DNA of 64,000 nucleotides from Hyalangium minutum. Its GTDB lineage: Bacteria; Myxococcota; Myxococcia; Myxococcales; Myxococcaceae. Under the pieces are notes generated by a model. That model ran no database searches. It saw only the letters and a program-made list of their open reading frames with translations, and had not been told where the DNA came from. This document shows, in pieces, positions 2,890 through 58,776 of this stretch. Position 1 is the stretch's first letter, and each line of letters begins with the position of its first letter. The translations under genes and the position numbers were made by a program. The stretch covers positions 248,001 through 312,000 of the forward strand of contig NZ_JMCB01000006.1 of the NCBI RefSeq assembly GCF_000737315.1, read 5' to 3'.

Positions 2890-5727
2890 TCACTTCGTGG
2901 GTGGAGGCGTCTCCCCAGGTGCCGTGGCCGGCGCTGCAGCCGTGGCCCCACCCGGTGCGTCCACCTTGAAGCCCGCTCGCTCCAGCATGGCCCGCATCTC
3001 GGAGCGCGCCACCGACTTGCTCAGCGCCTCGTTCGGCTCGATGACCTTCTTCTTCACCAAGTCGAGCAGCGAGTCGTTCAGCGTCACCATCCCCTGCCCG
3101 CGCGACGTCTGCATCACCGAGGGAATCTGGAACGTCTTCCCCTCGCGGATCAGGTTCGACACCGAGCCCGTGCACAGCAGCACTTCCTGCGCCGCCACCC
3201 GCCCGCCGCCGATGCGCTTGCACAACGTCTGGGCAACGACGGCCTTGAGCGACTCGGAGAGCATCATCCGGATCTGCGGCTGACGATCCGCCGGGAACTG
3301 GTCGATGATGCGGTCCACCGTGGACGCCGCCGTGTTCGTGTGCAGCGTCCCGAACACCAGGTGCCCCGTCTCCGCCGTCTCGATGGCCGTGGCGATCGTC
3401 TCCAGGTCCCGCATCTCGCCCACCAGCACCACGTCCGGATCCTCGCGCAGCGCCGCCCTCAGCGCGTTCTTGAACGAGGCCGTGTGCACCCCCACCTCGC
3501 GCTGGTGCACCAGGCAGCTCTTGTTCTTGTGGACGAACTCGATCGGGTCCTCCACCGTGATGATGTGGTCCTCACGGTGGCGGTTCACGTAGTCGATCAG
3601 CGCCGCCAGCGTCGTGGACTTGCCGCTCCCCGTCGGCCCCGTCACCAGCACCAGCCCCTTCGTCAGGAAGCACAGGTCCAGCACGTGCCGCGGCAGGCCG
3701 ATCTCCTCCGCCGTGCGGATCTTGTTGGGGATCTGCCGCAGCACCGCGGCAATGCCCCTCCGATCCTCGAAGATGTTCACGCGGAAGCGCGCCGCCGACG
3801 TCTCGTAGGCAAAGTCCGTGTCGCGCAGTTCCTCCCACTGCCTCCGGTTCTTGTCCGGAGCGATGCTGAAGAGCATCGCCTGGAGCTTCTCGTGGGTGAT
3901 GACGCCGTAGTCCTCGATGGCCACCATGTCGCCGTCGATGCGCATGTGCGGCAGCGTCTCGCTCGTCAGGTGCAGGTCCGAGGCCTCACGCTCCAGCATC
4001 TCCTTCATCAGCGCGAGCATCTGCGCCTCAGCCGCGCGCCGGTGGTCCTGGGCCTCCTCGACGGAGACGGCGGGCGCGGCGGGCGTCAGCACGGGAGCCG
4101 CTGCGGCAGCCACGGGCACCGGGGCCTGAGTCACAGGAGCCGCAGGGGCAACCTGGACAGGCGGAGTGACCGGAGTGGGCGGCACCGGAGCGACCGGTGT
4201 AGCGGGAGCCACGGGAGCCGCAGCCGGTGCGGCGGCCACAGGCACCGGAGGAAGCGTCGAAGGCGCTGCGGGAGCGGCCGGCGCCGTTGAAGCAGCAGGC
4301 GCGGAGATAGGAGCGGCTGGAAGGGGAATCGGCGGGAGGGTGGTCGGCCCCGCCGGTGCGGCGGGCGCAGCCACAGTGGCGGTGGGTGCAGGCACCGGCG
4401 CGGTGGTGACCGGTGGCGCCGGAGTGATCGGAGCGGCCGGAAGGGGAATCGGCGGGAGGGTGGTCGGCCCCGCCGAAGCAGCAGGAGCGGCCGCTGCAGG
4501 AACAGGAACCGGCGGGTGCGTCGCAGGCCCTGCATGCGCTACCGGAGCGGCCACAGCGGTGACAGGAACTGGCGAGCGCGTCTCGGGCACGGCAGCGATT
4601 GGAGCCGCCGCAGCCACAGCGGGAGCAGGAACCGGAACCGGTGGATGCGTCGCAGATCCCGCGGGAGCAACAGCAGCAGGAACCGGAACCGGCGGATGCG
4701 TCGCAGGTCCAGCAGGAGCCACCAGAGCGGCCGTGGCAGGAACCGGAACCGGCGCGTGAGTCGCAGGTCCAGCAGGAGCCACCGGAGCGGCCGTGGCAGG
4801 AACCGGAACCGGCGGATGCGTCGCAGGTCCAGCAGGAGCCACCGGAGCGGCCGTGGCGGGAACAGGGACCGACGGATGCGCTGCAGGTCCTGCGGGAGCC
4901 ACCGGAGCGGCGGCGGGAACAGGAATCGGCGCGTGAGTCGCAGGTCCCGCTGCACCAGGAGCCGCCGCAGCCGGAGCAGGAACCGGCGCGTGAGTCGCAG
5001 GCCCCGCATGCGCGATAGGCGTAGCGGGAAGAGGAATGGGCGGGAGGGTGGACGGTCCCCGCTGAGCGGCCGGAGCCGCTGGCACAGCGGCAGGCGCGGC
5101 AGCCGTCGGCACCGGAGGCATCGTGAGAGGCCGCGCGGGAGCGACACGCGCGGGAGCAGCCGCCACCACCGGAGCCGCAGGAGTCTCCGCGAAGGCATTC
5201 GAAGGAATCGGCGCGGGCGTCACCGCCACCGGAGCGGAAGATGCGGCCGCGGCGTTCGGCACCTGCGCGTAGACGACCGCGGGCGCCGGGGGCTCTAGCT
5301 CGAGCGGGGGCGTTGCCGGCGCCTCCTGCGCGATCGTTCCTGGGTCGACAGCCCGGGCCGCCAGCTCGAGCATCTCGTACGGCGAGGCCAGCTCGAACTT
5401 CTCCTCCTCCGCGGGCGCCGGAAGCTGCGTGAAGGGCACCATCGACACCTTCACATGGCCCTGCACGTGCTCCAGCGTCACCTGCACCTGGCCCGCCGGC
5501 GCGGCATACGGGAACGCGAGCGTGCCCTCCGGCGGGAAGCCGGAACGCCGCTCCGCGGGCAGCAGTTCCCCAATCGCGCTGAGTATCTGCGGAGTGGTGA
5601 GGTTCTGCTTCAGCACCGGTAGGAGCCCGTTGGGGGTGCGCATGTTCACACCGCCCCCGGTCTCGATCTGCAGTTCCTGACCGGAGTCCTTGAAGAGCTT
5701 TTCGATGATGGGGTCGAGCCTGGCCAT
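2890..5727 (-). CDS. pilT: PilT/PilU family type IV pilus ATPase paralog with an N-terminal extension and a long Pro/Ala-rich linker
   Basis: ASDLHL, Walker A GPTGSGKST, TVEDPIE, ALREDPDVVLVGEMRD, GHLVFGTLHT, SVSNLIRE. Start reassigned to MARLDPII at 5727. This is a paralog, not necessarily the main pilT. Confidence 0.88.
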   Translation of the reverse strand: MARLDPIIEKLFKDSGQELQIETGGGVNMRTPNGLLPVLKQNLTTPQILSAIGELLPAERRSGFPPEGTLAFPYAAPAGQVQVTLEHVQGHVKVSMVPFTQLPAPAEEEKFELASPYEMLELAARAVDPGTIAQEAPATPPLELEPPAPAVVYAQVPNAAAASSAPVAVTPAPIPSNAFAETPAAPVVAAAPARVAPARPLTMPPVPTAAAPAAVPAAPAAQRGPSTLPPIPLPATPIAHAGPATHAPVPAPAAAAPGAAGPATHAPIPVPAAAPVAPAGPAAHPSVPVPATAAPVAPAGPATHPPVPVPATAAPVAPAGPATHAPVPVPATAALVAPAGPATHPPVPVPAAVAPAGSATHPPVPVPAPAVAAAAPIAAVPETRSPVPVTAVAAPVAHAGPATHPPVPVPAAAAPAASAGPTTLPPIPLPAAPITPAPPVTTAPVPAPTATVAAPAAPAGPTTLPPIPLPAAPISAPAASTAPAAPAAPSTLPPVPVAAAPAAAPVAPATPVAPVPPTPVTPPVQVAPAAPVTQAPVPVAAAAAPVLTPAAPAVSVEEAQDHRRAAEAQMLALMKEMLEREASDLHLTSETLPHMRIDGDMVAIEDYGVITHEKLQAMLFSIAPDKNRRQWEELRDTDFAYETSAARFRVNIFEDRRGIAAVLRQIPNKIRTAEEIGLPRHVLDLCFLTKGLVLVTGPTGSGKSTTLAALIDYVNRHREDHIITVEDPIEFVHKNKSCLVHQREVGVHTASFKNALRAALREDPDVVLVGEMRDLETIATAIETAETGHLVFGTLHTNTAASTVDRIIDQFPADRQPQIRMMLSESLKAVVAQTLCKRIGGGRVAAQEVLLCTGSVSNLIREGKTFQIPSVMQTSRGQGMVTLNDSLLDLVKKKVIEPNEALSKSVARSEMRAMLERAGFKVDAPGGATAAAPATAPGETPPPTK
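4500..5000 (-). repeat. 60-bp (20-aa APAGPATHPPVPVPATAAPV) coding tandem repeat in the PilT linker
   Basis: Lines 4681, 4741, 4801 and 4861 are near-identical in 60-nt register, with degenerate copies on both sides. Confidence 0.9.
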
Positions 5728-9981: not shown

Positions 9982-11202
9982 CTACTCGGCCACGAGTGTC
10001 AGCTCGGTGATCTCTGGCGCAGGGCCCAGGCGCAGCGGAGGCCCCCAGTAGCCGGTGCCCCGGCTCGTGTACACGCGAACGCCAGCGATGTGCGCGAGTC
10101 CCCGGATCACGGGCTGCTGGAGCTTCACGAAGAACATGAAGGGGAACAGCTGCCCGCCGTGGGTGTGTCCGGAGAGCTGCAGATCCACTCCCAGGTTCTT
10201 GGCCAGGAAGGCCGTGCGCGGCTGGTGGGCCAGGAGCACGCGCGGCACGCCCTCGGGAGCGCCCGCCAGCGCCAAGTCCGGACGGCACGCGTGGGCCGGA
10301 TCCATCCGCCCTCCCTCATGGTCCGTCACGCCTGCGACGACGAGCCGGGCCTCCGAGCGCTCCACCACACGGTGCTCGTTGTGCAGCACGGTGAGGCCCA
10401 GCCCGGAGACCTCGGCGGCCCAGGCGGCGCCTCCGTGGTAGTACTCGTGGTTGCCGGTGACGTAGTAGACGCCGAGCGGAGCGCGCAGCTCCGAGAGGGG
10501 CTTCACCTCCTCGCGCAGCGTGCGGACGCTGCCGTCCACCAGGTCTCCCGTCACCGCGATGATGTCCGGCTGCAAGGCGTTCACCTGCTCCACGACGCGC
10601 CGCAGGAAGTGCCGGTCGAGGGTGGGGCCGATGTGGATGTCGGAGATCTGCACCACGCGGACGCCGTGCAGCCCACTGCCGAGCTTCTTCACGGGGATCT
10701 TCAGCCGCTCGATGCGAGCCCGGCCGCGCGCAGTGAGGAAGGCGAAGGCGAGCGCTGGCAGCACCACGGCAAGGATGGCCACGGCCTTGCCCCGGGCGAG
10801 CGCCAGGGCCTCGGGCGCGGAGCCGAGCAGGTTCCAGAGGCCGACGACGAGGTCCGCCACGAGCACGGAGGGGAGAAGCAGGCCGAAGGTGCCCAGCCAC
10901 AGCATGGAGGTCCAGTACAGCACCTGATTGAGCAGGGTGGGCCGGCGGCGGGACGCGATGAACCCCAGCGGGATGGAGAAGAAGAGCAGCCACAGGGCGG
11001 TCCAGCCAATCGCCGTCCACGGCTGTCCGAGGTTCGGCTCCGACAGCAGCCGGAGCCCGATGTAGCCGTGGAGGGCGCCCACGAGGCTCACGGCGAAGAG
11101 CATCGCTACGAGGCCGCGGATGACGAGCCCGATGGGAATCTGGCTCAGCGGGACTCCGTCCTGCTGCGGCTCGTGCTCCATGCGCTGGGAGGCCTGCGAC
11201 AT
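9982..11202 (-). CDS. Membrane-anchored metallophosphoesterase (YkuE/YaeI-like)
   Basis: SDIHIG, GDLVDG, GNHEYY, LAHQP and GHTHGGQ motifs after 4 TM segments. Confidence 0.92.
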   Translation of the reverse strand: MSQASQRMEHEPQQDGVPLSQIPIGLVIRGLVAMLFAVSLVGALHGYIGLRLLSEPNLGQPWTAIGWTALWLLFFSIPLGFIASRRRPTLLNQVLYWTSMLWLGTFGLLLPSVLVADLVVGLWNLLGSAPEALALARGKAVAILAVVLPALAFAFLTARGRARIERLKIPVKKLGSGLHGVRVVQISDIHIGPTLDRHFLRRVVEQVNALQPDIIAVTGDLVDGSVRTLREEVKPLSELRAPLGVYYVTGNHEYYHGGAAWAAEVSGLGLTVLHNEHRVVERSEARLVVAGVTDHEGGRMDPAHACRPDLALAGAPEGVPRVLLAHQPRTAFLAKNLGVDLQLSGHTHGGQLFPFMFFVKLQQPVIRGLAHIAGVRVYTSRGTGYWGPPLRLGPAPEITELTLVAE

Positions 11203-11385
11203 CGTTCGTTCGCTCCCCCGCGGCACCGGCTCTGCCGCTGGACTCGGAGCCCCCAGCATAACGGGCGAGCACAGGCGCCGCCCGACATCCGGCAGCCTGC
11301 TTTGGGTTCAGGCTTGCTCTCTTACCCTTCGTTTCTCCTCTGGATTCTCGCGGTAGGCTCGGGTGTTTGCTAGGAGCACACTCGT

Positions 11386-12711
11386 ATGAGCCTGGACGTC
11401 CCATTCCTGCGCAGCTTCTTTCGAGCTGTCACCGATCGGCCCATCGAGTTCGATGATGGAGAGCCGTCTACCTACGTGCGGCTCTACGACTCGCCCGCGC
11501 TGGCACCACACGATCCAGTGGAGATGTTGGCTCGGCCCATCGAGTTCGCGCTCGGAAGCAGTGTCCAGCTCTTCTCTGGCTTCCGCGGCTCGGGCAAGAG
11601 CACGGAACTGCGCCGACTCCGCCAGCGGTTGCTCCAGCAGGGTTACAAGGTCGTCCTCTGCGACATTGAGGACTACCTCAACCTCTCGCAGAATGTGGAC
11701 GTGAGCGACTTCCTCATGGCCCTGGCTGGAGCCTTTGGGGAAGGCCTGCGTGCACAAGGCTACCTGAGCGGCGATCCTGCCGAGGAGAACTACTGGGACC
11801 GGCTGGTCGTCTTCCTCAAGGACACGGAGATCCGCATTCCCGAGGTAGGCGCGGGCGGACTGCTCAAGGCCTCGCTCAAGAGCGATCCTTCATTCCGTCA
11901 GAAGCTTCAGGAGCGCATGGCAGGGCACCTGGGCGCGCTCGTTGAGAGCATCCGCACTTTTTTCTCCTCCTGCATCCAGCGCATCAAGAAGAAGTTCGGC
12001 CAAGACACCGAGGTCGTCCTCCTCGTCGACTCGATGGAGCACATCCGAGGAACCTCCACCAACGCCGTGGGCGTGCAGGACTCGGTGATCAACCTTTTCA
12101 CAAGTCACAGCGACAAGCTCCAGTTCGCCGACCTGCATGTCGTCTACACCATCCCGCCCTACCTCAAGGTCCTGTACCAGAACCTCGGGACCCTCTACGC
12201 GCCGGGTGGTGTCTTCGTGCTTCCCACCCTCAAGATCCGCAACAAGGAGGGCTCCGAGGTCTTCCAGCCGGGTCTCGACCTCATGGAAAAGCTCATCTCC
12301 CGCCGGGGCGACTGGCGCAAGCTGCTGGGCGACAACCGCCAGACGCTCGATGAGATCAGCAAGCTCTCGGGTGGGCACCTGCGTGACTTTCTCCGTCTCT
12401 TCGCCGAGATCATCCGCCGTGCGGACAAGCTACCTGTACCGGATGCCACCCTCCAGGCTGCGATTTCCCAAGTCCGCTCCGAGTTCCTCCCTATTGCGGA
12501 CAAGGACGCGATCTGGCTGTCGAAGATTGCCGCCACCCACAGCGTCGCTTTGCCTGACAACAAGGACCTGCACGATCTGGCGCGTTACCTCGATACCCAT
12601 CTGGCGCTCTGCTACCGGAACGGTGACGAGTGGTATGACGTGCATCCTCTGGTGCGCGATGTGGTGCTGAATCAGGCGAAAGCCCTGACACCGGCTCCCG
12701 CCAAGCCGTAG
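11386..12711 (+). CDS. P-loop NTPase (STAND/KAP-like AAA ATPase)
   Basis: Walker A SGFRGSGKST, Walker B VVLLVDSMEH, SGGHLRDF and C-terminal WYDVHPLV. Confidence 0.85.
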   Translation: MSLDVPFLRSFFRAVTDRPIEFDDGEPSTYVRLYDSPALAPHDPVEMLARPIEFALGSSVQLFSGFRGSGKSTELRRLRQRLLQQGYKVVLCDIEDYLNLSQNVDVSDFLMALAGAFGEGLRAQGYLSGDPAEENYWDRLVVFLKDTEIRIPEVGAGGLLKASLKSDPSFRQKLQERMAGHLGALVESIRTFFSSCIQRIKKKFGQDTEVVLLVDSMEHIRGTSTNAVGVQDSVINLFTSHSDKLQFADLHVVYTIPPYLKVLYQNLGTLYAPGGVFVLPTLKIRNKEGSEVFQPGLDLMEKLISRRGDWRKLLGDNRQTLDEISKLSGGHLRDFLRLFAEIIRRADKLPVPDATLQAAISQVRSEFLPIADKDAIWLSKIAATHSVALPDNKDLHDLARYLDTHLALCYRNGDEWYDVHPLVRDVVLNQAKALTPAPAKP

Positions 12712-12728
12712 CGAGGAGCGGAGGCAAG

Positions 12729-15700
12729 ATGAGCCCCCCGTTCGAGGACGACCTGGGTCCATCAGGCGAGTTGGAGTGGGCTCGGCTGAAGCGGCAGGTG
12801 GAACTGGCCGAGGGATTCTGGCTCGGTTTCATCTTCGCCCCGAGCGCAAGGGCCACGGCGGCACTACGTCAGAGAACGGAGCGGTTACTTCGGGGACGAA
12901 CGCGCTCGCTCAGCTACTTTGCCCCGGCAGGCTCAGACGAGTTGCCGACAGTGCTGGCTTCACTACTCTCCAAGCCCGAGCATGCATCGGCTGGCGCGTG
13001 CTGGATCGAGGCATTGCAGGAGGATCCAGGGGATGGGTCCGCTCAGCCATGGCACGACTCCTGGCTGGAGTTGGTATCACGCATGAACGAGCGCCGGGAT
13101 GCCATTCGGCGGCACCTCGGCGGCGGACTCATCCTGGTGTCGTCTCCACGGATGAAGCCGCTGTTTCGCGAAGCTGCCTCTGATCTATGGGCGATCAGGG
13201 CGCTGGTCATCGAGTTCCAGCCCGGAGAGCAGCTCGCTCATGAATCACATGAGCCCAGGCACTCACTTTGGGAGTCTCAAACGCCGCCCGAGTGGACACT
13301 GGCGACGAAGGACCTCGCTTACATCCTGGCAGAGACGGGGAGGCTTTTAGCCAAGCCACATGCACGTGAGACGCCCCAGGCGATCGATGTCCTAGTACGG
13401 AGAGCTGCTGCTTTGACCGCCGCAGGCGAGACGGGAGAGGCCCTACAAGACGCGCGGCAAGCCATGAACCTCTTGCGACGCCATCAAGGCCGTGTTTCCA
13501 CACAACAACAGGTGGCTGTGCTGGAAACGCTCGCGCGAGCCGAAAAGGCCCATGGAGACCTGGATGCCGCTGCAGATCATTTCAGCAGAGCTGCGAAGTT
13601 CCTGAAGCCAGCGAGCAACAGGCATCGACTTCTGTTGCTTGACGAAGTCGCGAGCATCTCGCGTGAGCGAGGAGATCTCAGCCTCGCGAGTGACACATAC
13701 ACCGAGGCCCTCGCCCTCAGCCGCCAGCTGCGCTCCTCCCTCGGCGATTCCCCCACTGCCTTGCGCGACCTCTCCGTCTCTCTCGAAAGGATGGGAGACG
13801 TGCGCCTCGACCTCGGCGACCTGAACGCTGCGGCTGCTGCCTACGAAGAATCCCTCGCCCTCAGACGCCAGCTGCGCTCCTCCCTCGGCGATTCCCCCAC
13901 TGCTTTGCGCGACCTCTCTGTCTCTCTCAATAAAGTGGGCGATGTGCGCCGCGACCTTAGCGACCTGAACGCTTCGGCCGCCGCCTACGAAGAATCCCTC
14001 GCCCTCAGACGCCAGTTGCGCTCCTCCCTCGGCGATTCCCCCACTGCCCTGCGCGACCTCTCCGTTTCTCTCACCAAGATGGGAGACGTGCGCCGCGACC
14101 TCGGCGACCTGAATGCTGCGGCCGCCGCTTACGAAGAATCCCTCGCCCTCTGCCGTCAACTGCGCTCCTCCCTCGGCGATTCCCCCGCTGCCCTGCGCGA
14201 CCTCTCCGTCTCTCTTACCAAGATGGGAGACGCTCGCCGCGACCTCGGCGACCTGAATGTTGCGGCCGCCGCCTACGAAGAATCCCTCGCCCTCAGTCGC
14301 CACCTGCGCTCCTCCCTCAGCGATTCCCCCACTGCTCTGCGCGATCTCTCCATCTCTCTCAATGGAGTGGGAGACGTGCGCCGCGACCTCGGCGACCTGA
14401 ACGCTGCGGCCGCCGCTTACGAAGAATCCCTCGCCCTCTGCCGCCAGCTGCGCTCCTCCCTCGGCGATTCCCCCACTGCCTTGCGCGACCTCTCCGTCTC
14501 TCTCACCAGGGTGGGAGACGTGCGCCGCGACCTCGGCGACCTGAATGCTGCGACCGCGGCCTACGAGGAATTCCTCGCCCTCTGCCGCCAGCTGCGCTCC
14601 TCCCTCGGCGATTCCCCCGCTGCCCTGCGCGACCTCTCCGTCTCTCTCGAAAAGGTGGGCGACGCGCGCCTCGACCTCGGCGACCTGAACGCTGCGGCTG
14701 CTGCCTACGAAGAATCCCTCGCCCTCAGACGCCAGCTGCGCTCCTCCCTCGGCGATTCCCCCACTGCTTTGCGCGACCTCTCTGTCTCTCTCAATAAAGT
14801 GGGCGATGTGCGCCGCGACCTTAGCGACCTGAACGCTTCGGCCGCCGCTTACGAAGAATCCCTCGCCCTCTGCCGCCAGCTGCGCTCCTCCCTCGGCGAT
14901 TCCCCCGCTGCCCTGCGCGACCTCTCCGTTTCTCTCACCAAGATGGGAGACGTGCGCCGCGACCTCGGCGACCTGAATGCTGCGGCCGCCGCTTACGAAG
15001 AATCCCTCGCCCTCTGCCGCCAACTGCGCTCCTCCCTCGGCGATTCCCCCACTGCCTTACGCAACCTCTCCGTCTCTCTCACCAAGATGGGAGACGTGCG
15101 CCGCGACCTCGGCGACCTGAACGCTGCGGCTGCTGCCTACGAAGAATCCCTCGCCCTCTGCCGCCAGTTGCGTTCCTCCCTTGGCGATTCCCCCACTGCC
15201 TTGCGCGACCTCTCTGTCTCTCTCAATAAAGTGGGCGATGTGCGCCGCGACCTTAGCGACTTGAACGCTGCGGCCGCCGCCCACGAAGAATCCCTCGCCC
15301 TCAGACGCCAGTTGCGCTCCTCCCTCGGCGATTCCCCCACTGCCTTGCGCGACCTCTCCGTTTCTCTCACCAAGATGGGAGACGTGCGCCGCGACCTCGG
15401 CGACCTGAATGCTGCGGCCGCCGCTTACGAAGAAGCCCTCGCCCTCTGCCGTCAACTGCGCTCCTCCCTCGGCGATTCCCTCGCTGTCCTGCGCGACCTC
15501 TCCGTCTCTCTTACCAAGATGGGAGACGCTCGCCGCGACCTCGGCGACCTGAATGTTGCGGCCGCCGCCTACGAAGAATCCCTCGCCCTCAGTCGCCACC
15601 TGCGCTCCTCCCTCAGCGATTCCCTCACCGCTCTGCGCGATCTCTCCATCTCTTTCAATAGAGTGGGAGACGTGCGCCGCGACCTTAGCGACCTGAACGC

Positions 15701-16043
15701 TGCGGCCGCCGCTTACGAGGAATCCCTCGCCCTCTGCCGTCAGCTGCGCTCTTCCTGCGGCAATTCTCCCACCGCTCTGCGCGACCTCTCTGTCTCTCTT
15801 AACAAGGTGGGCGACGTGCGCCTTGACCTCGGCGACCTGAGCGCTGCGACTGCGGCCTTCGAGGAATCCCTCGCCCTCTGCCGTCAGCTGCGGTCCATCA
15901 TGGGCGACACTCCGGATATGCGCCACCTGCTTATCTACGTCCTCACCCAGCTAAGTGACACGCGGCAATCGATGGGAGAGGGGGAGGCCAGTCAGGCTGC
16001 TCTCCGCGAGGCCTCCTCGCTCAGGGCGTCTTCCGAGCAGTAA
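12729..16043 (+). CDS. TPR-repeat protein with an N-terminal degenerate NTPase-like domain and 15 x 48-aa repeats
   Basis: 1104-aa ORF with RBS GGAGG, 17 bp after the ATPase stop. Repeat consensus RQLRSSLGDSPTALRDLSVSLxxxGDVRRDLGDLNAAAAAYEESLALx. Confidence 0.9.
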   Translation: MSPPFEDDLGPSGELEWARLKRQVELAEGFWLGFIFAPSARATAALRQRTERLLRGRTRSLSYFAPAGSDELPTVLASLLSKPEHASAGACWIEALQEDPGDGSAQPWHDSWLELVSRMNERRDAIRRHLGGGLILVSSPRMKPLFREAASDLWAIRALVIEFQPGEQLAHESHEPRHSLWESQTPPEWTLATKDLAYILAETGRLLAKPHARETPQAIDVLVRRAAALTAAGETGEALQDARQAMNLLRRHQGRVSTQQQVAVLETLARAEKAHGDLDAAADHFSRAAKFLKPASNRHRLLLLDEVASISRERGDLSLASDTYTEALALSRQLRSSLGDSPTALRDLSVSLERMGDVRLDLGDLNAAAAAYEESLALRRQLRSSLGDSPTALRDLSVSLNKVGDVRRDLSDLNASAAAYEESLALRRQLRSSLGDSPTALRDLSVSLTKMGDVRRDLGDLNAAAAAYEESLALCRQLRSSLGDSPAALRDLSVSLTKMGDARRDLGDLNVAAAAYEESLALSRHLRSSLSDSPTALRDLSISLNGVGDVRRDLGDLNAAAAAYEESLALCRQLRSSLGDSPTALRDLSVSLTRVGDVRRDLGDLNAATAAYEEFLALCRQLRSSLGDSPAALRDLSVSLEKVGDARLDLGDLNAAAAAYEESLALRRQLRSSLGDSPTALRDLSVSLNKVGDVRRDLSDLNASAAAYEESLALCRQLRSSLGDSPAALRDLSVSLTKMGDVRRDLGDLNAAAAAYEESLALCRQLRSSLGDSPTALRNLSVSLTKMGDVRRDLGDLNAAAAAYEESLALCRQLRSSLGDSPTALRDLSVSLNKVGDVRRDLSDLNAAAAAHEESLALRRQLRSSLGDSPTALRDLSVSLTKMGDVRRDLGDLNAAAAAYEEALALCRQLRSSLGDSLAVLRDLSVSLTKMGDARRDLGDLNVAAAAYEESLALSRHLRSSLSDSLTALRDLSISFNRVGDVRRDLSDLNAAAAAYEESLALCRQLRSSCGNSPTALRDLSVSLNKVGDVRLDLGDLSAATAAFEESLALCRQLRSIMGDTPDMRHLLIYVLTQLSDTRQSMGEGEASQAALREASSLRASSEQ
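13722..15881 (+). repeat. 15 x 144-bp in-frame tandem repeat
   Basis: 15 units counted in the translation. 15 x 144 = 2160 bp, matching the span 13722-15881. Confidence 0.95.
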
Positions 16044-16122: not shown

Positions 16123-17862
16123 CTACTCTTGGCGGCGGCGGCGCGCAGCGCCCAGGACCAGCACCAGCGTCAAGGCGCCTACTCCTGCCCCGGGCGAAGC
16201 TCCGCACCCGCAGCCCACCTCGAACACCGAAGGTGACGTCACTCCGCCGGTTGAGGACGCTGTCACATCGAAGCGGTTGGGCGTGGACTGTAGGCTGTAG
16301 GACCCCAGTTCCTCCGCCGAGGCCCACAGTTCATGTGCACCTTCGGCGAGATCCGCGGGCACGTCGTACACAAAGGCCCCCGTGCTGTCCGCTGTCACCT
16401 GCGCATACTCCGTCCCCTCCAGGAACAGATGAACGGAGACTCCCGGTTGCGCAGTGCCTTCGATGCGAGGCTTCCGCGCCACGCCCGTGGCACCATTCGC
16501 GGGCTGGGTCAGCACGGGCGCCGAGGGCACTCGGAAAGGCTGTGAGTACGTGGTCTCGGAACCGTAGGCGGCACCGGAATCGATCGTGCTCGGGCCCGCC
16601 CCAAAGGGGCCACCGGCCGCCGTCGACTGGCCGGGATAGCCCGCGACCACCGAGACCTTGCACGCGATGAACTCGCCCTGCAGCAGGACGACGCCACCGC
16701 CACCGCCTCCGCCAGGCCCCGATTCATTCGTCACGTTGCGGGTGTCTCCGCCCGCTCCGCCCGAGGCCTGCACGAGACCACACGTCAGCGTCCGCTCGGC
16801 GCGCAGGGAGATGGCACCGCCCGCACCTCCACCTCCCGCACCGTCATCGCCCGCGGAGGCTACATAGTCCGCGGAGGCGCCCATGGCGCTGAACCGGCCT
16901 GTCCCCACCACATCTCTCGCACGGATGAGAACCACCCCACCGCCCGCCGCCCCTGGAGTGCCTACATCCACATGGCCGCTTCCGCCCCCGCCTCCGCCTC
17001 CAAAGACGAGGCGCTCGTAGGGCAGATAGACCAGGGGAGCACCTCCCAGCCCTCCCACGTCATCCGGCTGCGGCAGCCGTCCGAGAGAGTACCCTCCCTG
17101 GCCTCCCGCCCCCGAGTGGCCTCCGCCTCCTCCGCCCGAGCTGTGGCAGTTGCCCGCCCCGCCCGCGTTGGCCAGGTTCCCCCGTCCCCCCGCGATACCG
17201 AAGCGCCCAGCCACCAGCCCCTCTCCTTTATAGGAGCTGCCCACCCCCGGAGCCTCATCGAGCGCCGTGCAACCTTCGCCTGCCAGGTGGTTGATGAACG
17301 CGCCGCCACGGAAGCCCGCGCCATCGGCGCCGATGAGCCCTCCATTGGTCAGCGTGCCCGTGGCCATCAGCGCCAGGATGCCACCCGCGCTCCCATTCCA
17401 GGGCACTGCCTTCAGCGAGCCGTCCTCGACCACCAAAACATCCGTGTACTCGGGCACGTTCACCACTTGGGCCGCGCTGGCCGCATAGCTCCTCTGCAGC
17501 GGCGCGGTCAGCCGCAGCGAGGCCTCTGTCGCCGCCTCCACCCGTGCGTATTCGAACCGTCCCACCGGACTGGCTTCGAGCGGGATGGCCGCTGCATCTC
17601 CCGAGGCCGGTGCGGGCAGCAGGCCCGTGGACTGATGCACGAGCACCAGCTCGCCCGCCTTGAAGGCTCCCGCGTTGGAGATCGTCAGCTCCTTCGTTCC
17701 AGCCGCCGCGTTCGCGGTGAGCGCTCCCACGTGGTTGATGACCCTGTTCGGGCTCAACACCTGCAACACGCCATCCCGGCCGGTACCGAGCCCGAAGGTG
17801 TCCGGCTCGGCCAGCGCACCACCCGCAAGGAGCCATCCAGCCAAGAAAAGGGGGATTCGCAT
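16123..17862 (-). CDS. AgmC-like secreted Gly-rich protein with an Ig-like domain and a MYXO-CTERM-type sorting tail
   Basis: Signal peptide then EPDTFGLGTGRDG. The C-terminus is GCGCGASPG-hydrophobic-RRRRQE. Start at MRIPLF. Confidence 0.75.
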   Translation of the reverse strand: MRIPLFLAGWLLAGGALAEPDTFGLGTGRDGVLQVLSPNRVINHVGALTANAAAGTKELTISNAGAFKAGELVLVHQSTGLLPAPASGDAAAIPLEASPVGRFEYARVEAATEASLRLTAPLQRSYAASAAQVVNVPEYTDVLVVEDGSLKAVPWNGSAGGILALMATGTLTNGGLIGADGAGFRGGAFINHLAGEGCTALDEAPGVGSSYKGEGLVAGRFGIAGGRGNLANAGGAGNCHSSGGGGGGHSGAGGQGGYSLGRLPQPDDVGGLGGAPLVYLPYERLVFGGGGGGGSGHVDVGTPGAAGGGVVLIRARDVVGTGRFSAMGASADYVASAGDDGAGGGGAGGAISLRAERTLTCGLVQASGGAGGDTRNVTNESGPGGGGGGGVVLLQGEFIACKVSVVAGYPGQSTAAGGPFGAGPSTIDSGAAYGSETTYSQPFRVPSAPVLTQPANGATGVARKPRIEGTAQPGVSVHLFLEGTEYAQVTADSTGAFVYDVPADLAEGAHELWASAEELGSYSLQSTPNRFDVTASSTGGVTSPSVFEVGCGCGASPGAGVGALTLVLVLGAARRRRQE

Positions 17863-17906
17863 GAGGCGATGGTGCCTCAGCGCACCGAGACCGGTCGAGT
17901 CTCTGC

Positions 17907-18443
17907 TCAGCCGACGCGCCGCACGATGAACTCGCAGTAGGGGGCCCCGTCGTGCATACACTGCTTCTCCTTCACGTCCGCGCGTTGCCCCAGCGCAAGA
18001 GCCAGCCCTCGCACGAGGCCGATGCCCATCCCGCACATCTTCCGGGGCGAGGCGTACACGACACGCACTGTGGAGGCATCCACGCGGTGGCAATCCAATC
18101 GGGACGGCTGGGCGTGCGGATCCTTGCGTACCTTCTCGTGGATGCGCTCGACGTTCTCGACCACTTCGAGGATGCCCCACCCGGGCTGGATGACTCCCCG
18201 GTAGATCTTCATGAGCCCGGGGACGATGAACTCACCGAAGTCCTCGAGTAGGAACCTCACGGAGCGCCCCATCACCCGCGAGGCCGCGTGGACGAGCGCT
18301 CCCACCTCTTCATCCGGGTAGCTCTGGAAGGCCAAGTAGATCCGCGAGGGGAGCTTCGCCTCTTTGACGAGCGTCTCCCAGCCCTGCTCGCCCATGCGCT
18401 CCTGCGCATAGGTGCGGAGCTGGTTGAAGATGATGCCGTGCAT
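17907..18443 (-). CDS. H-NOX (heme NO-binding) domain protein
   Basis: MHGIIF start, YPDEE, FGEF, a candidate proximal His (ERIHEK), a YxSxR motif (YASPR) and C-terminal CMHDGAPYCEF. Confidence 0.82.
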   Translation of the reverse strand: MHGIIFNQLRTYAQERMGEQGWETLVKEAKLPSRIYLAFQSYPDEEVGALVHAASRVMGRSVRFLLEDFGEFIVPGLMKIYRGVIQPGWGILEVVENVERIHEKVRKDPHAQPSRLDCHRVDASTVRVVYASPRKMCGMGIGLVRGLALALGQRADVKEKQCMHDGAPYCEFIVRRVG

Positions 18444-32501: not shown

Positions 32502-35411
32502 ATGCGCAAGCAGCGTCTTGGAAGTCTCGCCTGCGGACTCCTGGTTTTGTCTGTCTTTGGATGCGAAGCCATGGCTCCGGCCGACGCGCCGCTGGAAGAA
32601 GCACCCGAGGTGGCGCAGGTCCAGAGCCGGCTCACGGCGGTGACTGGCTTCGGCACCAACCCGGGCGCGCTGAGGATGTACAAGTACGTGCCCGCGAACA
32701 TGCCGGCCAACGCGCCGCTGGTGGTCGCCATGCACGGCTGTACACAGACGGCGGCGGCGTATGAGGCCACCGGGTGGACGGCGCTGGCCGACATCCTCAA
32801 GTTCTACGTCGTCTACCCGGAGCAGGTGAGCAGCAACAACCAGAACGCCTGCTTCAACTGGTTCGAGCCGGGCGACATCACCCGGGGCCAGGGCGAGGCG
32901 CTCTCCATCAAGCAGATGGTGGACGCCATGAAGGCGGCGCACTCCATCGACGCCAGCCGCGTCTTCGTCACCGGCCTGTCCGCTGGCGCCGCCATGACGC
33001 ACGTGATGGCCGCCACCTACCCGGACGTCTTCTCCGCCGGCGCGGTGATGGCGGGCATCCCGTACAAGTGCGCCACCTCCATGACGGACGCCTTCACCTG
33101 CATGAGCCCAGGCGTGGACAAGACGCCCACGGCCTGGAGGGATTTGGTGAAGGGCGCCTACTCTGGCTACACGGGCAGCTATCCGCGCATGTCCCTCTGG
33201 CACGGCACCTCCGACTACGTGGTGAAGAACACCAACCAGACGGAGGGGGTGGAGCAGTGGACGGCGGTCCACGGCATCGACATGACGGCGGACGTCAGCG
33301 ACACCGTCGCCGGCTACCCCCACAAGGTCTACCAGGACGCGGCCGGCAAGGCCCTGGTGGAGACGTACGCCATCACCGGCATGGGCCACGGCACCGCCAT
33401 TGATCCGGCCACCAAGTTCCCCGGCACCAGTGTGGCGTGCGGCACCGCGGGCGCCTACGTGCTCGACACGGACATCTGCTCTACGTGGCAGGTGGCGAAG
33501 TTCTTCGGGCTCGACAACTCCGACACGGCCGCGCCCTCCGTCAGCCTCACCGCACCCGCCAATAACGCCAGCGTGAGTGGCACCGTGCAGGTGACGGCCA
33601 GCGCCTCGGACAACGTGGGCGTCTCCAAAGTGGAGTTCTTCATCGACAACACCCTGGTGGGAACCGACACGGCCTCGCCCTACGCCTACGCGTGGAACAG
33701 CGCCGCCGCCACCAACGGCACCCACGTGCTGGTGGCCAAGGCCCATGACGCGGCCGGAAACACCGCCACCTCCGCCTCCATCTCCGTCAACGTCTCCGGC
33801 GGCATCTCCGACACCACCGCCCCCACCGTGAGCATCACCTTCCCCACCCACGGCTCCACCGTCGCGGGCGCGGTGGACATCACCGCCACCGCCTCGGATG
33901 ACACCGGTGTGACGAAGGTCGAGTTCCTCATCGACGGCACCGTTGTAGGCCAGGGCGTCTCCGCACAGCAGGCAGGCCCCTATGTCTTCAGCTGGAACAC
34001 CACCTCGTATGCCGCCGGCAGCCACTCGCTCACCGCGCGGGCCTATGACGCGGCGGGCAACAGCGCCACCGCCCCCTCGGTGACGGTGACGGTGGATCAG
34101 AACTCGGTGAACTTCGTCGAGCGCTTCTCCAACAACGGCCCGGACAAGGCCGGATGGACCCTGACGGAGTGGGCGCTGGACGCCAGCGACCAGACGGGCA
34201 CCACCGGCAGCAAGTCCATCCTCGGCTCGGCCGTGCCTGCCTTCAACACCGTTACCAAGACGGCCACCGTCAGCCTCACCCTGAGCTCCAACCCGCGCCT
34301 CACCTACTGGCGCAAGCTGGACCTGTACGGCGCCAACATCTCCGCCTCGGCCAGCTTCAGGGTCGTCCTCAATGATGGCACCGACCATGTGGTGGACTCC
34401 GCCACCAAGAGCGGCCTGGGCGCCCTCGCCGAGTCCACCTGGACGCAGCGCGCGAACATCGACTTGTCCGCGTACGCGGGCCGCGCCGTGACGCTGAAGT
34501 TCATCGTCACCGCCACGGACACCGGCTCTACCACCAGCCGCGCCAAGGCCTGGGTGGACAGCATCACCGTGGGCCCGCCCTCCACGGCGCTCGACGTGAG
34601 CGCCCCCACCGTGAACGTGACGGCCCCCGCCGCCAGCGCCACCCTCAGCGGCACGGTGGACGTGACGGCCAGCGCCTCGGACAGCTCCGGCATCAGCAAG
34701 GTGGAGTTCTACGTGGACGGCGCGCTGGCGGAGACCGACACCGCCTCGCCCTTCGTCTTCACCTGGAACACCGCCCTCGTGGCCAATGGCACCCACACAC
34801 TCATGGCCAAGGCCTACGACGCGGCCAACAACATCAGCACCGACAACGACACCTCCATCACCGTGAGCAACGCCGCCGGAGGCACCACCACCGCCACCTT
34901 CGCCAGCATCGCGGCGGAGGATGGCTACGTGAAGGCCAACGCGGACGGCTCCTCCGCTGCGGTGGGCACCTTCTCCACCCCGGCCCTCGGCAAGGGCGCC
35001 GACGCGCTGCTCAACCGCGCCTTCTTCTCCTTCGACACCTCCGCGCTCCCGGACACGGCCACGATTGTCCGGGCCTCACTGAAGGTGACGCTGTCCTCGG
35101 CCTCGGGAGACCCCTGGGCGGACCCCACGGGCAACACCCTCACCCTTGATCTGAAGAACGGCACCTTCGGCGCAGCCACCACCGAGACGTCGGACTTCAC
35201 CGCCACCGCCACCGCCACCGACGTGGCCGACATGGTCAAGTTCACCACCGGCGCTCAGAGCTCCACGGACTTCAACACCTCGGGCCTGGCCGCCATCAAC
35301 AAGACCGGCAAGACGCAGGCCCGGCTCCGCTTCTCGCTGAACCCCACCGGCACCCGCTACCTCTTCCTCACCGAGGGCTCCGGCGCCGTCCTCACCGTGG
35401 AGTACAAGTAG
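32502..35411 (+). CDS. PHB-depolymerase-family (LpqC-like) esterase lipoprotein with 3 Ig-like domains and an extra C-terminal domain
   Basis: Lipobox VFGC, VVAMHGCTQ, CFNWF, TGLSAGAAM (GxSxG), WHGTSD, GMGH. Three repeated SASD..GVSKVEF.ID Ig-like modules. Confidence 0.88.
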   Translation: MRKQRLGSLACGLLVLSVFGCEAMAPADAPLEEAPEVAQVQSRLTAVTGFGTNPGALRMYKYVPANMPANAPLVVAMHGCTQTAAAYEATGWTALADILKFYVVYPEQVSSNNQNACFNWFEPGDITRGQGEALSIKQMVDAMKAAHSIDASRVFVTGLSAGAAMTHVMAATYPDVFSAGAVMAGIPYKCATSMTDAFTCMSPGVDKTPTAWRDLVKGAYSGYTGSYPRMSLWHGTSDYVVKNTNQTEGVEQWTAVHGIDMTADVSDTVAGYPHKVYQDAAGKALVETYAITGMGHGTAIDPATKFPGTSVACGTAGAYVLDTDICSTWQVAKFFGLDNSDTAAPSVSLTAPANNASVSGTVQVTASASDNVGVSKVEFFIDNTLVGTDTASPYAYAWNSAAATNGTHVLVAKAHDAAGNTATSASISVNVSGGISDTTAPTVSITFPTHGSTVAGAVDITATASDDTGVTKVEFLIDGTVVGQGVSAQQAGPYVFSWNTTSYAAGSHSLTARAYDAAGNSATAPSVTVTVDQNSVNFVERFSNNGPDKAGWTLTEWALDASDQTGTTGSKSILGSAVPAFNTVTKTATVSLTLSSNPRLTYWRKLDLYGANISASASFRVVLNDGTDHVVDSATKSGLGALAESTWTQRANIDLSAYAGRAVTLKFIVTATDTGSTTSRAKAWVDSITVGPPSTALDVSAPTVNVTAPAASATLSGTVDVTASASDSSGISKVEFYVDGALAETDTASPFVFTWNTALVANGTHTLMAKAYDAANNISTDNDTSITVSNAAGGTTTATFASIAAEDGYVKANADGSSAAVGTFSTPALGKGADALLNRAFFSFDTSALPDTATIVRASLKVTLSSASGDPWADPTGNTLTLDLKNGTFGAATTETSDFTATATATDVADMVKFTTGAQSSTDFNTSGLAAINKTGKTQARLRFSLNPTGTRYLFLTEGSGAVLTVEYK

Positions 35412-35451
35412 CCCCCGCACTGTCTGATCAGCGTCTGATCCCAAACGGATT

Positions 35452-35482
35452 CCGGCCCTGTCCGAAAACAGGACAGGGCTGG
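35452..35482 (+). terminator. Stem-loop downstream of the esterase gene
   Basis: CCGGCCCTGTCC-gaaaaca-GGACAGGGCTGG, a 12-bp stem with one G-T pair. No strong U-tract. Confidence 0.55.
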
Positions 35483-35705
35483 AGCGTGGATTATCCACTG
35501 TTCAAGGTTTTCTCGATTCGGTCGTAAGTTCTTGTTTTCACGAGGGAATTTCGAGGCTCACCGGATTCAGGGGGGTAGACTTACATTCTCTCTAAAACGC
35601 GGTGGAGCAGCCGTGTCTCGTGGCCAAAAAACCTACATGGGGCTTAACGCGTTGTGAGAATGAGTCGTTTCAGCTGTTTGCGGGGGGATTCTCGGAGACC
35701 GAGAG

Positions 35706-35723
35706 TTGGCATGAGGGGTGCTT
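35706..35723 (+). promoter_or_regulatory. Putative sigma-54 promoter (-24/-12)
   Basis: TTGGCATGAGGGGTGCTT has GG-N10-GC spacing and lies about 50 nt upstream of ATG 35772. Confidence 0.55.
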
Positions 35724-35771
35724 AAGGGAGACACGAGCCCCACTCGCCCCCGTTGGGGAGGAGAGACCCCC

Positions 35772-36920
35772 ATGATGAACCCGTTCACGCTGAAGCGCCT
35801 GCAGGCAATGACTCTGAGCTCCTTCATGATGCTGGCTGCCGCCGGCTGTGGGGGCGAGACAGCTCCGGACGAGCAGCCGGTCATCGATGATGAGACCACG
35901 ACGGACGAGACGTGGGATGCGGAGCAGCAGGCGACGCTGGGCAGCACGGTGCTCGGCGCGTACCTGTTCACCAAGGAGACCTTCAACGGCAACGGCCGCA
36001 CCTGCGCCACCTGCCACACGCTGGCCAACGGCGGCCTGACGCCCGCGCAGGCGCAGGCCATCTACGCCAAGAACAAGAAGGACCCCCTGTTCCGCCCCAT
36101 CGACAGCGATGACGGCACGGGCGCCAGCTACAAGCAGCTGCTCACCCACGCGACGGTGACGGTGGACATCGACCTGCCGGCGAACGTGCGGCTGGCTGAC
36201 AACCCCACGGCGCGCACCGTGAAGCTGCGCCGCGCCATCCCCAGCACGTTCGACAGCCCGCGGTTCGACCCGGCCATCATGTGGGACGGCCGTGAGCCGA
36301 CGCTGCAGCTGCAGGCCCAGCACGCCATCGCGGGCCACGCCCAGGCCAAGCGGGCGCCCAACCAGACGGAGCTGAACGCCCTGGTGGACTTCGAGAAGGC
36401 GCTGTTCTCCTCGAAGCAGACGTTTGACTACGCGCTGACCGGCAAGGCGCCGGCGCTGCCCACGGGCAAGACCGAGTCCGAGAAGCGCGGCAAGGCGTTC
36501 TTCGCCGAGACGGGCCTGTGCGGTGGCTGCCACTTCGGCGCGCTGCTCAACGAGACCTCGCAGTTCAACCCCATGGGCCTGCCGGCGGGCTTCCACTTCG
36601 GCAGCGCGCTGGTGTCCGAGCTCAACGTGGCGCAGAACCCCGTGCGCGAGTACATCGTCAAGAATCCGGACGGCACCGAGGCCCACGTGATGTCGCCTGA
36701 CCCGGGCCAGATGCTGGTGACGGGCGTGCCGCAGATGGCCGGCCTGTTCAAGATGGTGTCGCTGCGCAACCTGAAGAACAGCGCGCCGTACTTCCACGAC
36801 AACTCCGCGAAGACCATCGAGCAGATCACCCAGCAGTACAAGATGCTGATGGACGTGGCCGGCATCCCCTACACGCAGCAGGATCTGACCGACATCACGG
36901 CTTACATGAAGCTGCTCTAG
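35772..36920 (+). CDS. Di-heme cytochrome c (peroxidase/MauG-like) lipoprotein
   Basis: Two CxxCH motifs (CATCH, CGGCH), MWDGRE, SLRNLKNSAPYFHD. Lipobox AAGC. Confidence 0.85.
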   Translation: MMNPFTLKRLQAMTLSSFMMLAAAGCGGETAPDEQPVIDDETTTDETWDAEQQATLGSTVLGAYLFTKETFNGNGRTCATCHTLANGGLTPAQAQAIYAKNKKDPLFRPIDSDDGTGASYKQLLTHATVTVDIDLPANVRLADNPTARTVKLRRAIPSTFDSPRFDPAIMWDGREPTLQLQAQHAIAGHAQAKRAPNQTELNALVDFEKALFSSKQTFDYALTGKAPALPTGKTESEKRGKAFFAETGLCGGCHFGALLNETSQFNPMGLPAGFHFGSALVSELNVAQNPVREYIVKNPDGTEAHVMSPDPGQMLVTGVPQMAGLFKMVSLRNLKNSAPYFHDNSAKTIEQITQQYKMLMDVAGIPYTQQDLTDITAYMKLL

Positions 36921-53534: not shown

Positions 53535-53575
53535 GCAACCTCAGAGTGTCCCCAAGACTCGCCTCAGGATCAACC

Positions 53576-58638: not shown

Positions 58639-58776
58639 CCACCTTCTCCCTGAGGCTGCGAACGCGGCACTGTAGCCGACACCACCTCCGTGTCGACCTT
58701 CCCGTGACCGCCCTCAGGAAGCCTTCCGTGGAATGAAGGCCAGAGAACCTTCACCTCACGCCTTCGTCATCACGCC

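Follow-up and report, generated by a model that had tools for sequence, protein, structure and literature searches.

Can the nucleotide-driven switch and the repeat-built sensor of an NLR-like receptor reside on two separate polypeptides? The question is raised by two adjacent genes of the myxobacterium Hyalangium minutum, which lie within a 64,000-nucleotide stretch of contig NZ_JMCB01000006.1 (assembly GCF_000737315.1, positions 248,001–312,000 of the forward strand); we analysed this whole stretch and refer to it as the window, counting positions from its first letter. A preliminary description of the DNA, made from the letters alone, had proposed a split NLR-like sensor system here, consisting of a P-loop ATPase followed after 17 bp by a 1104-residue protein with a long helical repeat array. 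Both open reading frames (ORFs) and their spacing are exactly as it reported: gene A (11386–12711, + strand) encodes a protein of 441 residues and gene B (12729–16043, + strand), on the same strand, its 1104-residue partner. Our analysis shows that A and B are a strictly linked operon across phyla, and their predicted structures suggest that the products very probably form a two-component STAND-like switch in which a pseudo-AAA+ domain of B serves as the adaptor.

Linkage of the two genes across phyla

Linkage was inspected at 19 distinct loci (21 locus identifiers, two short contigs repeating longer ones), which span Myxococcota, Acidobacteriota, Verrucomicrobiota, one alphaproteobacterium and, with four loci, plasmids of Cyanobacteriota. 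Searches with tblastn and a hidden Markov model (HMM) placed an ORF carrying the N-terminal domain of B (the N-domain) directly downstream of A at every locus of L001–L014 and L022–L024, a set that takes in homologues of 31–47% identity and one Aliidongia contig. The gap between the two genes at homologous loci measures 16–19 bp, or is replaced by a 4-bp overlap; in the window, the 17-bp spacer (12712–12728, + strand) holds a Shine-Dalgarno sequence, CGAGGAGCGGAGGCAAG, with GAGGAG/GGAGG directly before the ATG of B. The reverse test, starting from two unusual B proteins, found an A-like gene immediately upstream.

An all-against-all comparison of the ORFs of 20 loci and the window shows that A and B, with their antisense shadows, are the only conserved genes, and that the flanks differ in every locus; no third gene or effector is conserved in this comparison. 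Over 55 locus pairs, the identity of A correlates strongly with that of the N-domain (r = 0.95), which shows co-inheritance and not protein binding, with the N-domain evolving somewhat faster than A (mean identity 44% versus 53%). The preliminary description had named a lack of co-occurrence in other genomes as grounds for abandoning its proposal; at the inspected loci, whose neighbourhoods were compared, the two genes do occur together. The window itself contains no second copy of either gene.

Architecture of the ATPase and its partner

The Walker motifs that had been read in A are intact. The Walker A motif GFRGSGKST (residues 65–73; 11578–11604, + strand) has G65, G68, G70, K71 and T73 invariant in an alignment of 60 sequences, and the pattern G..G.GK[ST] is present in all 120 A homologues listed; in the Walker B region VVLLVDSMEH (residues 210–219; 12013–12042, + strand), V211, D215, S216 and E218 are invariant in the same alignment, as are R221 and G222 just downstream. 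An AlphaFold2 (AF2) model of A (predicted local distance difference test score, pLDDT, 90.9; predicted template-modelling score, pTM, 0.90) shows an N-terminal extension of 55 residues, a P-loop nucleoside triphosphatase (NTPase) core, a lid of helices and, at the C-terminus, a winged helix. A helical insertion of about 108 residues (97–204; 11674–11997, + strand) interrupts the core between strand beta2 and Walker B; modelled as helices 106–204 between strands 88–93 and 210–215, it is soluble and has no transmembrane segment. The lid and winged-helix region (residues 294–434; 12265–12687, + strand), delimited by predicted secondary structure and conservation, is modelled as helices 294–403 followed by a beta-hairpin at 407–419; it includes a sensor-2-like SGGHLRD (328–334), and its residues G329, G330, R333, D334, W416, D418, H420 and P421 are invariant in the 60 sequences.

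The best match to this fold in the PDB, found with Foldseek, is the Orc1/Cdc6 protein 2qby_A (E 2.6e-7), followed by the archaeal PF01637 ATPases 2qen and 2fna and then by Apaf-1, CED-4, mS29/DAP3, BrxC, TnsC and RdrA. Matches to Apaf-1 (1z6t_B, 3shf) and CED-4 (4m9s, 2a5y) reach E of about 1e-5, those to Orc1/Cdc6 and PF01637 being slightly better, and the model together with these matches gives A the modules of NOD-type proteins: an NTPase domain, a helical domain and a winged helix. At the level of sequence, no Pfam family reaches its gathering score on A; the best is AAA_22 at 26 bits (cut-off 27), then AAA_16, and a weak ORC-CDC6-like match at residues 322–368 is also below threshold. Among the STAND families, nSTAND_NTPase5 scores 15.9 bits against a cut-off of 34 and nSTAND6 is likewise below its own, so that, by Pfam gathering scores, A has no sequence membership in a recognised STAND clade (NACHT, NB-ARC, MalT/MNS, SWACOS, nSTAND1–6). 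NCBIfam returned nothing useful for A, and a sequence search of the PDB with an A profile gave similarity at the P-loop level only. The Foldseek ranking and the missing Pfam STAND score lead us to class A as an ATPase of the ORC/Cdc6-STAND type by fold, predicted to be an active nucleotide switch, and not as a demonstrable member of any named STAND clade.

A search of the genome collection with the single A sequence recovered 9 loci, its patterns being too specific; among 8000 candidates examined, more than 1380 proteins are A homologues at E<=1e-3. Identity across phyla is 53–84%, with 53–58% in Acidobacteria, Verrucomicrobiales, Binatia and Polyangiales. Among named homologues, those of Cystobacter, Archangium and Melittangium are nearest to A; annotations throughout are hypothetical or generic. 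The length of A is near-constant, at 434–477 residues in nearly all of the top 120 matches.

The partner begins with the N-domain (residues 1–165; 12729–13223, + strand), which has no Pfam match even at E<=10. Its AF2 model (pLDDT 92.4) has alternating strands and helices, with five strands, and resembles AAA+ cores: 42 PDB structures match at E<=1e-3, all those listed being AAA+ proteins, and these include NSF-D2, Hda, DnaC, Rif2, DnaA, clamp-loader delta and IstB (E 5e-5 to 1e-3, template-modelling (TM) score about 0.5). The beta1-alpha1 loop, where a Walker A motif would be expected, is reduced to about three residues (APS), and a GxxxxGK[ST] motif occurs in 0 of 140 members of the N-domain family. 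An exhaustive profile search returned 1156 cluster representatives of this family at E<=1e-3 and 634 at E<=1e-10, a word-indexed search having given only 2 proteins through a lack of sensitivity; throughout the 1156, the domain is N-terminal, save in a few truncated or chimeric entries. These data support the view that the N-domain is a pseudo-AAA+ core that has lost its P-loop. Profile-profile comparison detected no sequence relationship between the N-domain and A (hhalign probability 0.4), ruling out a recent duplicate of A, and a PDB sequence search with an N-domain profile gave only noise or P-loop-level matches; the pseudo-AAA+ label thus depends on a predicted fold with the TM score given above.

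In an alignment of 35 sequences, R49, W108, N120, R123, D152 and W154 of the N-domain are invariant, and K143, R147 and R157 are at least 90% conserved. Most of the conserved residues map to helices alpha3 and alpha4 and to strand beta5, and from the order of the secondary-structure elements we infer that this side would correspond to the arginine-finger side of AAA+ proteins. The preliminary description had read the N-terminus of B as an inactive NTPase-like domain lacking a Walker A motif, which agrees with the predicted fold and with the state of the motif in its relatives. The notion of a degenerate switch needs rewording: the degenerate AAA+ core stands, but as a constant module that is paired with A and placed ahead of interchangeable C-terminal modules.

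Behind the N-domain, B is built of helical repeats. A divergent TPR region resembling the sensor of MalT (residues ~200–326; 13326–13706, + strand) leads into an array of 16 units of 48 residues (residues 327–1094; 13707–16010, + strand). Pfam scores TPR_MalT (PF17874) on B at 107.2 bits against a cut-off of 45, with its best stretch at 221–383, and TPR_12 (cut-off 30.1) at 154.1 bits in 16 stretches. At the nucleotide level, Tandem Repeats Finder reports 13708–15896 with a period of 144 bp, 15.2 copies and 87% matches; at the protein level, unit alignment gives 15 near-identical TPR-like hairpins of 48 residues, rather than of 34 or 42, and one degenerate last unit that caps the array, so the 15 helical units described previously gain a sixteenth. 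Nucleotide identity among the units is 79–99%, and block duplications can be recognised, from units 2–5 to 11–14 and from units 2–3 to 8–9.

The 48-residue period recurs in 57 of 150 family representatives and is a hallmark of the family; among these representatives, the B protein of the window is one of the longest and its array the most homogeneous (self-identity at a shift of 48 of 0.70, against 0.60 or less). Three strains of Cystobacter fuscus have A proteins that are 88–96% identical and B proteins of 670, 814 and 862 residues, differing by exact multiples of 48 residues, and therefore repeat copy number turns over. An assembly artefact or pseudogene is ruled out by the intact frame of 1104 residues, by purifying selection on the repeats and by homologous arrays elsewhere. 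Several sub-domain Pfam and NCBIfam matches on the array (Baculo_P15, PRKG1_interact, DUF2688, exodeoxyribonuclease VII small subunit and the HaaT RiPP TPR protein) are spurious, and we rejected them as low-complexity or repeat artefacts.

Variants and genomic setting of the pair

What follows the N-domain differs between members of the family. TPR_12 occurs in 73 of 93 scanned B-family proteins; in one protein (P0210), the N-domain is followed by NA-iREase3, NACHT and pentapeptide repeats, and in another (P0228) by a Ser/Thr kinase. Together with the linkage of the two genes, this C-terminal variety indicates that A and the N-domain are the invariant core, the C-terminus of B being a swappable module. 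At the locus with the NACHT-pentapeptide B (L015, 8058–13592), four same-strand ORFs of 429, 498, 216 and 664 residues follow, of which the first three lie close together; Pfam scans of three of the four gave no significant match, and these ORFs may be extra components of that variant. One B homologue (L009, 2063–4276) has a Cys-rich, zinc-ribbon-like tail (CPRCAF...CRCGH...CPSC...CRFCGC) absent from other family members. A metagenomic protein of 709 residues (P0237) is a chimera in which residues 8–235 match A 161–390 and are joined directly to the N-domain from about profile position 42, with TPRs behind; either a natural in-frame deletion has fused A to B or the protein is an assembly artefact. 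A three-gene arrangement in a member of the Nannocystaceae (L012, 4719–8461) begins with an A paralogue that is 29% identical to A and has a degenerate Walker A, GAGLTT, and continues with an active A and then a B carrying the N-domain (HMM E 2e-14). This arrangement may represent an intermediate or a more elaborate version of the system.

Distant A homologues, 26–34% identical over the full length, are found on plasmids of Acidisarcina, Acaryochloris, Nostoc and Calothrix. At three of the four cyanobacterial loci, the gene after A encodes a protein of 1830–2059 residues whose N-terminus is collinear with the N-domain (HMM E 1e-5 to 1e-6, values which come from a tiny database and convince only because the matches are both collinear and syntenic). 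Two of these giant B proteins were scanned and carry the N-domain, then helical repeats, then at least 14 WD40 repeats. The plasmid copies adjoin HicAB, RelE/ParE, integrase, insertion sequence (IS), NACHT or CHAT genes, and in one Nostoc strain at least five copies are spread over three plasmids. A different layout from that of the Nostoc and Acaryochloris plasmids is seen on Calothrix plasmid4 (L026, 8195–14340), where the gene after the A-like ATPase starts with a second intact P-loop, GYSGCGKS, and not with the N-domain, and a separate WD40 protein of 1300 residues follows.

In the window, the module has a GC content of 0.62–0.65, rising to 0.675 in 14001–15000, against about 0.69 for the whole. 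GC content at third codon positions (GC3) is 0.81 in A, 0.67 in the N-terminal part of B and 0.77 in the B repeats. The preliminary description had judged codon usage to be less GC-biased than in the neighbours; this applies relative to three nearby genes (GC3 0.88–0.91) but not to two others, and since the latter have values of 0.72 and 0.79 the contrast is moderate. Other GC dips in the window (0.60–0.64 against about 0.69, at 1001–2000, 35001–36000, 53001–54000 and 58001–59000) are similar to or deeper than that of the module, and these regions may hold further horizontally acquired genes. A scan for promoters and terminators gave nothing informative.

The genes flanking the pair are unrelated to it, as had been proposed: their translations indicate that the upstream side encodes a receiver-domain protein and a membrane metallophosphoesterase, and that genes for a Gly-rich secreted protein and an H-NOX-like protein lie downstream. 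The metallophosphoesterase (9982–11259, − strand, 425 residues, membrane form) is on the strand opposite to A. At locus L017, a 150-residue Metallophos_2 protein (4116–4568, + strand) is encoded 66 bp upstream of A and on the same strand; no other locus has a metallophosphoesterase there, so its presence next to A in two places is probably a coincidence. Downstream of B, the Gly-rich protein (16123–18180, − strand, 685 residues) ends in ...GCGCGASPGAGVGALTLVLVLGAARRRRQE, a tail that we take to be a MYXO-CTERM sorting signal, in keeping with the myxobacterial source of the DNA. As listed, the 5' end of its ORF is overlapped by a 178-residue ORF (17907–18443, − strand) starting MHGIIFNQL..., presumably a haem NO/O2-binding (H-NOX) domain protein.

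Relation to known systems and possible roles

The closest parallel is the nSTAND2 two-gene operon described by Kaur, Iyer, Burroughs & Aravind 2021 (PMC8195603). Like the present pair, it is a mobile operon of two genes, one for an active NTPase of STAND type and the other for a protein with eroded NTP-binding motifs; a hetero-oligomer is its predicted product, and it is related to mS29/DAP3-like NTPases, mS29 being among the fold matches of A. In nSTAND2, however, each of the two proteins has a complete STAND module, with a GT4 or HEPN effector attached to the inactive one, whereas here the inactive partner is an AAA+ core of about 165 residues that has neither lid nor winged helix, has no detectable sequence similarity to A and is fused to TPR or WD40 repeats instead of an effector. 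GT4 and HEPN are absent from the 25 most frequent Pfam families across 93 B-family members, the range covered by this check, a further 22 rarer families being unlisted. In MoxR-vWA ternary conflict systems, which are enriched in myxobacteria and cyanobacteria, the iSTAND or iSTAND2 component likewise supplies an inactive STAND-like constant part of the predicted sensor and acts with a separate active AAA+ ATPase (PMC7159879, PMC8195603), but the partner ATPase here is Orc1/Cdc6-like and not of the MoxR type, the pair has no effector-associated domains and no effectors, and the gene tables of the sampled loci contain no MoxR or vWA gene. Both the active-inactive nSTAND2 pairs and the iSTAND sensors were themselves predicted computationally (PMC8195603, PMC7159879).

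The order of elements, NTPase, lid, winged helix and then a TPR or WD40 sensor, is that of single-chain STAND/NLR proteins such as Avs/AVAST, bNACHT, MalT and AfsR; near-identical repeats occur in both, the TPRs of B are MalT-like and the fold of A matches Apaf-1 and CED-4. Here, by contrast, NTPase and repeats are separate ORFs in every locus, B adds the pseudo-AAA+ domain, the pair has neither an N-terminal effector nor a C-terminal DNA-binding output, and there is no Avs or NLR match in PADLOC. By fold, the best counterparts are Orc1/Cdc6 (2qby_A, 1w5s, 1fnn) for A and Hda, clamp-loader delta, Rif2 and DnaC for the N-domain, which recalls ORC, the clamp-loader delta/delta' subunits and Hda-DnaA; identity to these assemblies is about 10–17%, there is no replication context here, and repeat arrays are attached to the partner. 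KAP NTPases and NPHP3 resemble A in having helices inserted between the two Walker motifs, and NPHP3 further combines such an NTPase with TPR_12 repeats, but KAP and NPHP3 proteins are single-chain, the insertion of A has no transmembrane helices, and the A of the window has no KAP_NTPase match and an NPHP3_N match of only E 0.17, far below the cut-off. Cyanobacterial relatives of A do pass the cut-offs of KAP_NTPase (26.2 bits versus 20) and NPHP3_N (27.5 versus 24.8).

Inactive AAA+ subunits regulate active neighbours in clamp loaders, in ORC and in Hda with DnaA. By analogy, A and B would form one self-contained, operonic and ATP-driven sensor switch, STAND/NLR-like but distributed over two polypeptides. 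The pseudo-AAA+ domain of B would dock on A through the canonical AAA+ inter-subunit interface, with the basic patch R123, K143, R147 and R157 facing the ATP site of A. The TPR solenoid of B would bind a protein ligand, its occupancy would alter how the pseudo-AAA+ domain engages A, and this changed engagement would control the ATP state and oligomerisation of A. The output might come from the winged helix and helical insert of A binding nucleic acid, from the array sequestering the ligand, or from an unlinked effector; as to the role, we favour surveillance of foreign or non-self protein, in a conflict or immune system.

Taken as a whole, the statement that the pair is a split STAND/NLR-like, ATP-driven sensor switch with a surveillance or conflict role appears to us about evenly poised. 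An immune role is made plausible by an organisation like that of NLRs, by repeat arrays that turn over, by C-terminal modules that can be swapped, by a patchy and mobile distribution and by the surroundings of the plasmid copies; the NLR-like traits counted here are the variable C-terminal module, the near-identical repeats with recent block duplications, the B lengths that differ between strains by multiples of 48 residues, a GC3 below that of several nearby genes and the distant copies on plasmids. A number of observations weigh against this statement, in addition to the reservations attached above to the pseudo-AAA+ label and to the cyanobacterial E-values. The identity of 53–58% across phyla makes A unusually conserved for an immune sensor. 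The repeats of B are under purifying selection (ratio of nonsynonymous to synonymous polymorphism, pN/pS, 0.31) and their variation is mild, at positions 5, 17, 27, 29 and 37, with no clear hypervariability, leaving positive selection on the repeats unsupported overall. Pfam, PADLOC and NCBIfam detect no effector domain in A or B, as the preliminary description had noted, and no enzymatic effector is present among the conserved neighbours in the ORF comparison. The PADLOC run that it had suggested (PADLOC-DB v2) gave no convincing match: A has no full-length match and only a hit to mad8 over the P-loop region 62–179 (E 8.3e-5), and B has generic TPR matches and weak coiled-coil matches only. 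Close homologues (at least 40% identity) stand amid metabolic and transport genes with no defence island, only scattered toxin-antitoxin pairs being near, and carriage by phages or viral contigs was not detected, with no tblastn match in GenBank phages and no confirmed match in IMG/VR. Of the split NLR-like sensor first proposed, the split architecture is thus upheld, but a defence or kin role is not established, given the metabolic neighbourhoods and the absence of phage or viral carriage.

Much of this evidence would suit a non-immune regulatory switch, a STAND-like signalling module with a housekeeping or accessory task in the manner of MalT, AfsR, NPHP3 or ORC, in which B senses an endogenous protein or metabolite state and the winged helix of A binds DNA or a cellular partner, regulating transcription, replication or development. 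We consider this possible, if rather unlikely. The conservation and barely varying length of A, the metabolic neighbourhoods, the lack of an effector domain, the purifying selection on the repeats and the absence from the phage and viral contigs searched all speak for it, as do the best fold match of A, a DNA-bound Orc1/Cdc6, the MalT-like TPR region of B (107 bits) and the interspersion of non-defence with defence clades in a recent STAND survey (PMC13581612). It fits less well with the absence of a dedicated helix-turn-helix or output domain, with the variants fused to NACHT-pentapeptide modules or a kinase, with the strain-to-strain variation in repeat copy number and with cyanobacterial paralogues expanded on plasmids beside toxin-antitoxin and integrase genes; the ever-changing flanks and the GC3 below several nearby genes point, moreover, to horizontal mobility. 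An assembly or chaperone machine, with A as an AAA+ remodeller and B as a TPR co-chaperone or scaffold bringing the client, would make use of TPR arrays as classic protein-protein scaffolds and of NSF D2 among the top fold matches of the N-domain, but we find it improbable: the fold of A is that of initiator/STAND switches and loader ATPases and not of the classical unfoldase clade, no client gene is conserved nearby, and the kinase, NACHT and WD40 variants of B are unfit for a dedicated co-chaperone. Most improbable of these accounts is a mobile-element remnant or accessory, A being a TnsC/TniB/IstB-like transposition regulator and B a target selector. TnsC and IstB are indeed among the fold matches of A and the N-domain, flanks differ at every locus and IS or integrase genes lie near some plasmid copies, but TnsC ranks below Orc1/Cdc6 and STAND proteins in the fold matches of A, and no transposase or integrase is conserved beside the pair at any close-homologue locus.

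The pair belongs to a large cross-phylum family that is apparently undescribed. Six family accession numbers are absent from searchable papers, and a largely overlapping accession set is absent from the supplements searched of PMC8195603 and PMC7159879. We found no description of the pair in the literature; the supplementary tables of a 2026 survey of 589 STAND clades lay outside this search, so A may be included there. The earlier remark that no characterised system has this architecture agrees with the lack of a convincing match in PADLOC, among PDB sequences or in the literature. Tentatively, the pair could typify a large and apparently undescribed class of NLR-like receptors with two components, in which a pseudo-AAA+ adaptor of about 165 residues couples interchangeable sensor or output modules to an Orc1/Cdc6-like ATPase for non-self surveillance without a conventional enzymatic effector, for example through nucleic-acid binding by the ATPase or target sequestration. 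On the counts above, the class would comprise at least 1156 cluster representatives for the N-domain and more than 1380 homologues of the ATPase; it would range over Myxococcota, Acidobacteriota, Verrucomicrobiota and Alphaproteobacteria and have distant forms in Cyanobacteriota.

If the split-switch reading is correct, it would add a new design to prokaryotic NLR-like sensing, with switch and repeat sensor as separate proteins joined via a dead AAA+ domain and with no recognisable effector, and would widen the known range of STAND architectures. It would also allow the gating of an active subunit by a pseudo-ATPase to be studied in a simple system of two proteins, and would give a function to more than 1000 proteins annotated as 'hypothetical protein' or 'tetratricopeptide repeat protein' in soil and freshwater bacteria, among them several lineages with multicellular habits. 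The near-identical arrays with strain-variable copy number are a convenient natural case of rapid sensor remodelling. Should the pair instead be a non-immune regulator, it would still be a widespread, conserved and unnamed signalling module.

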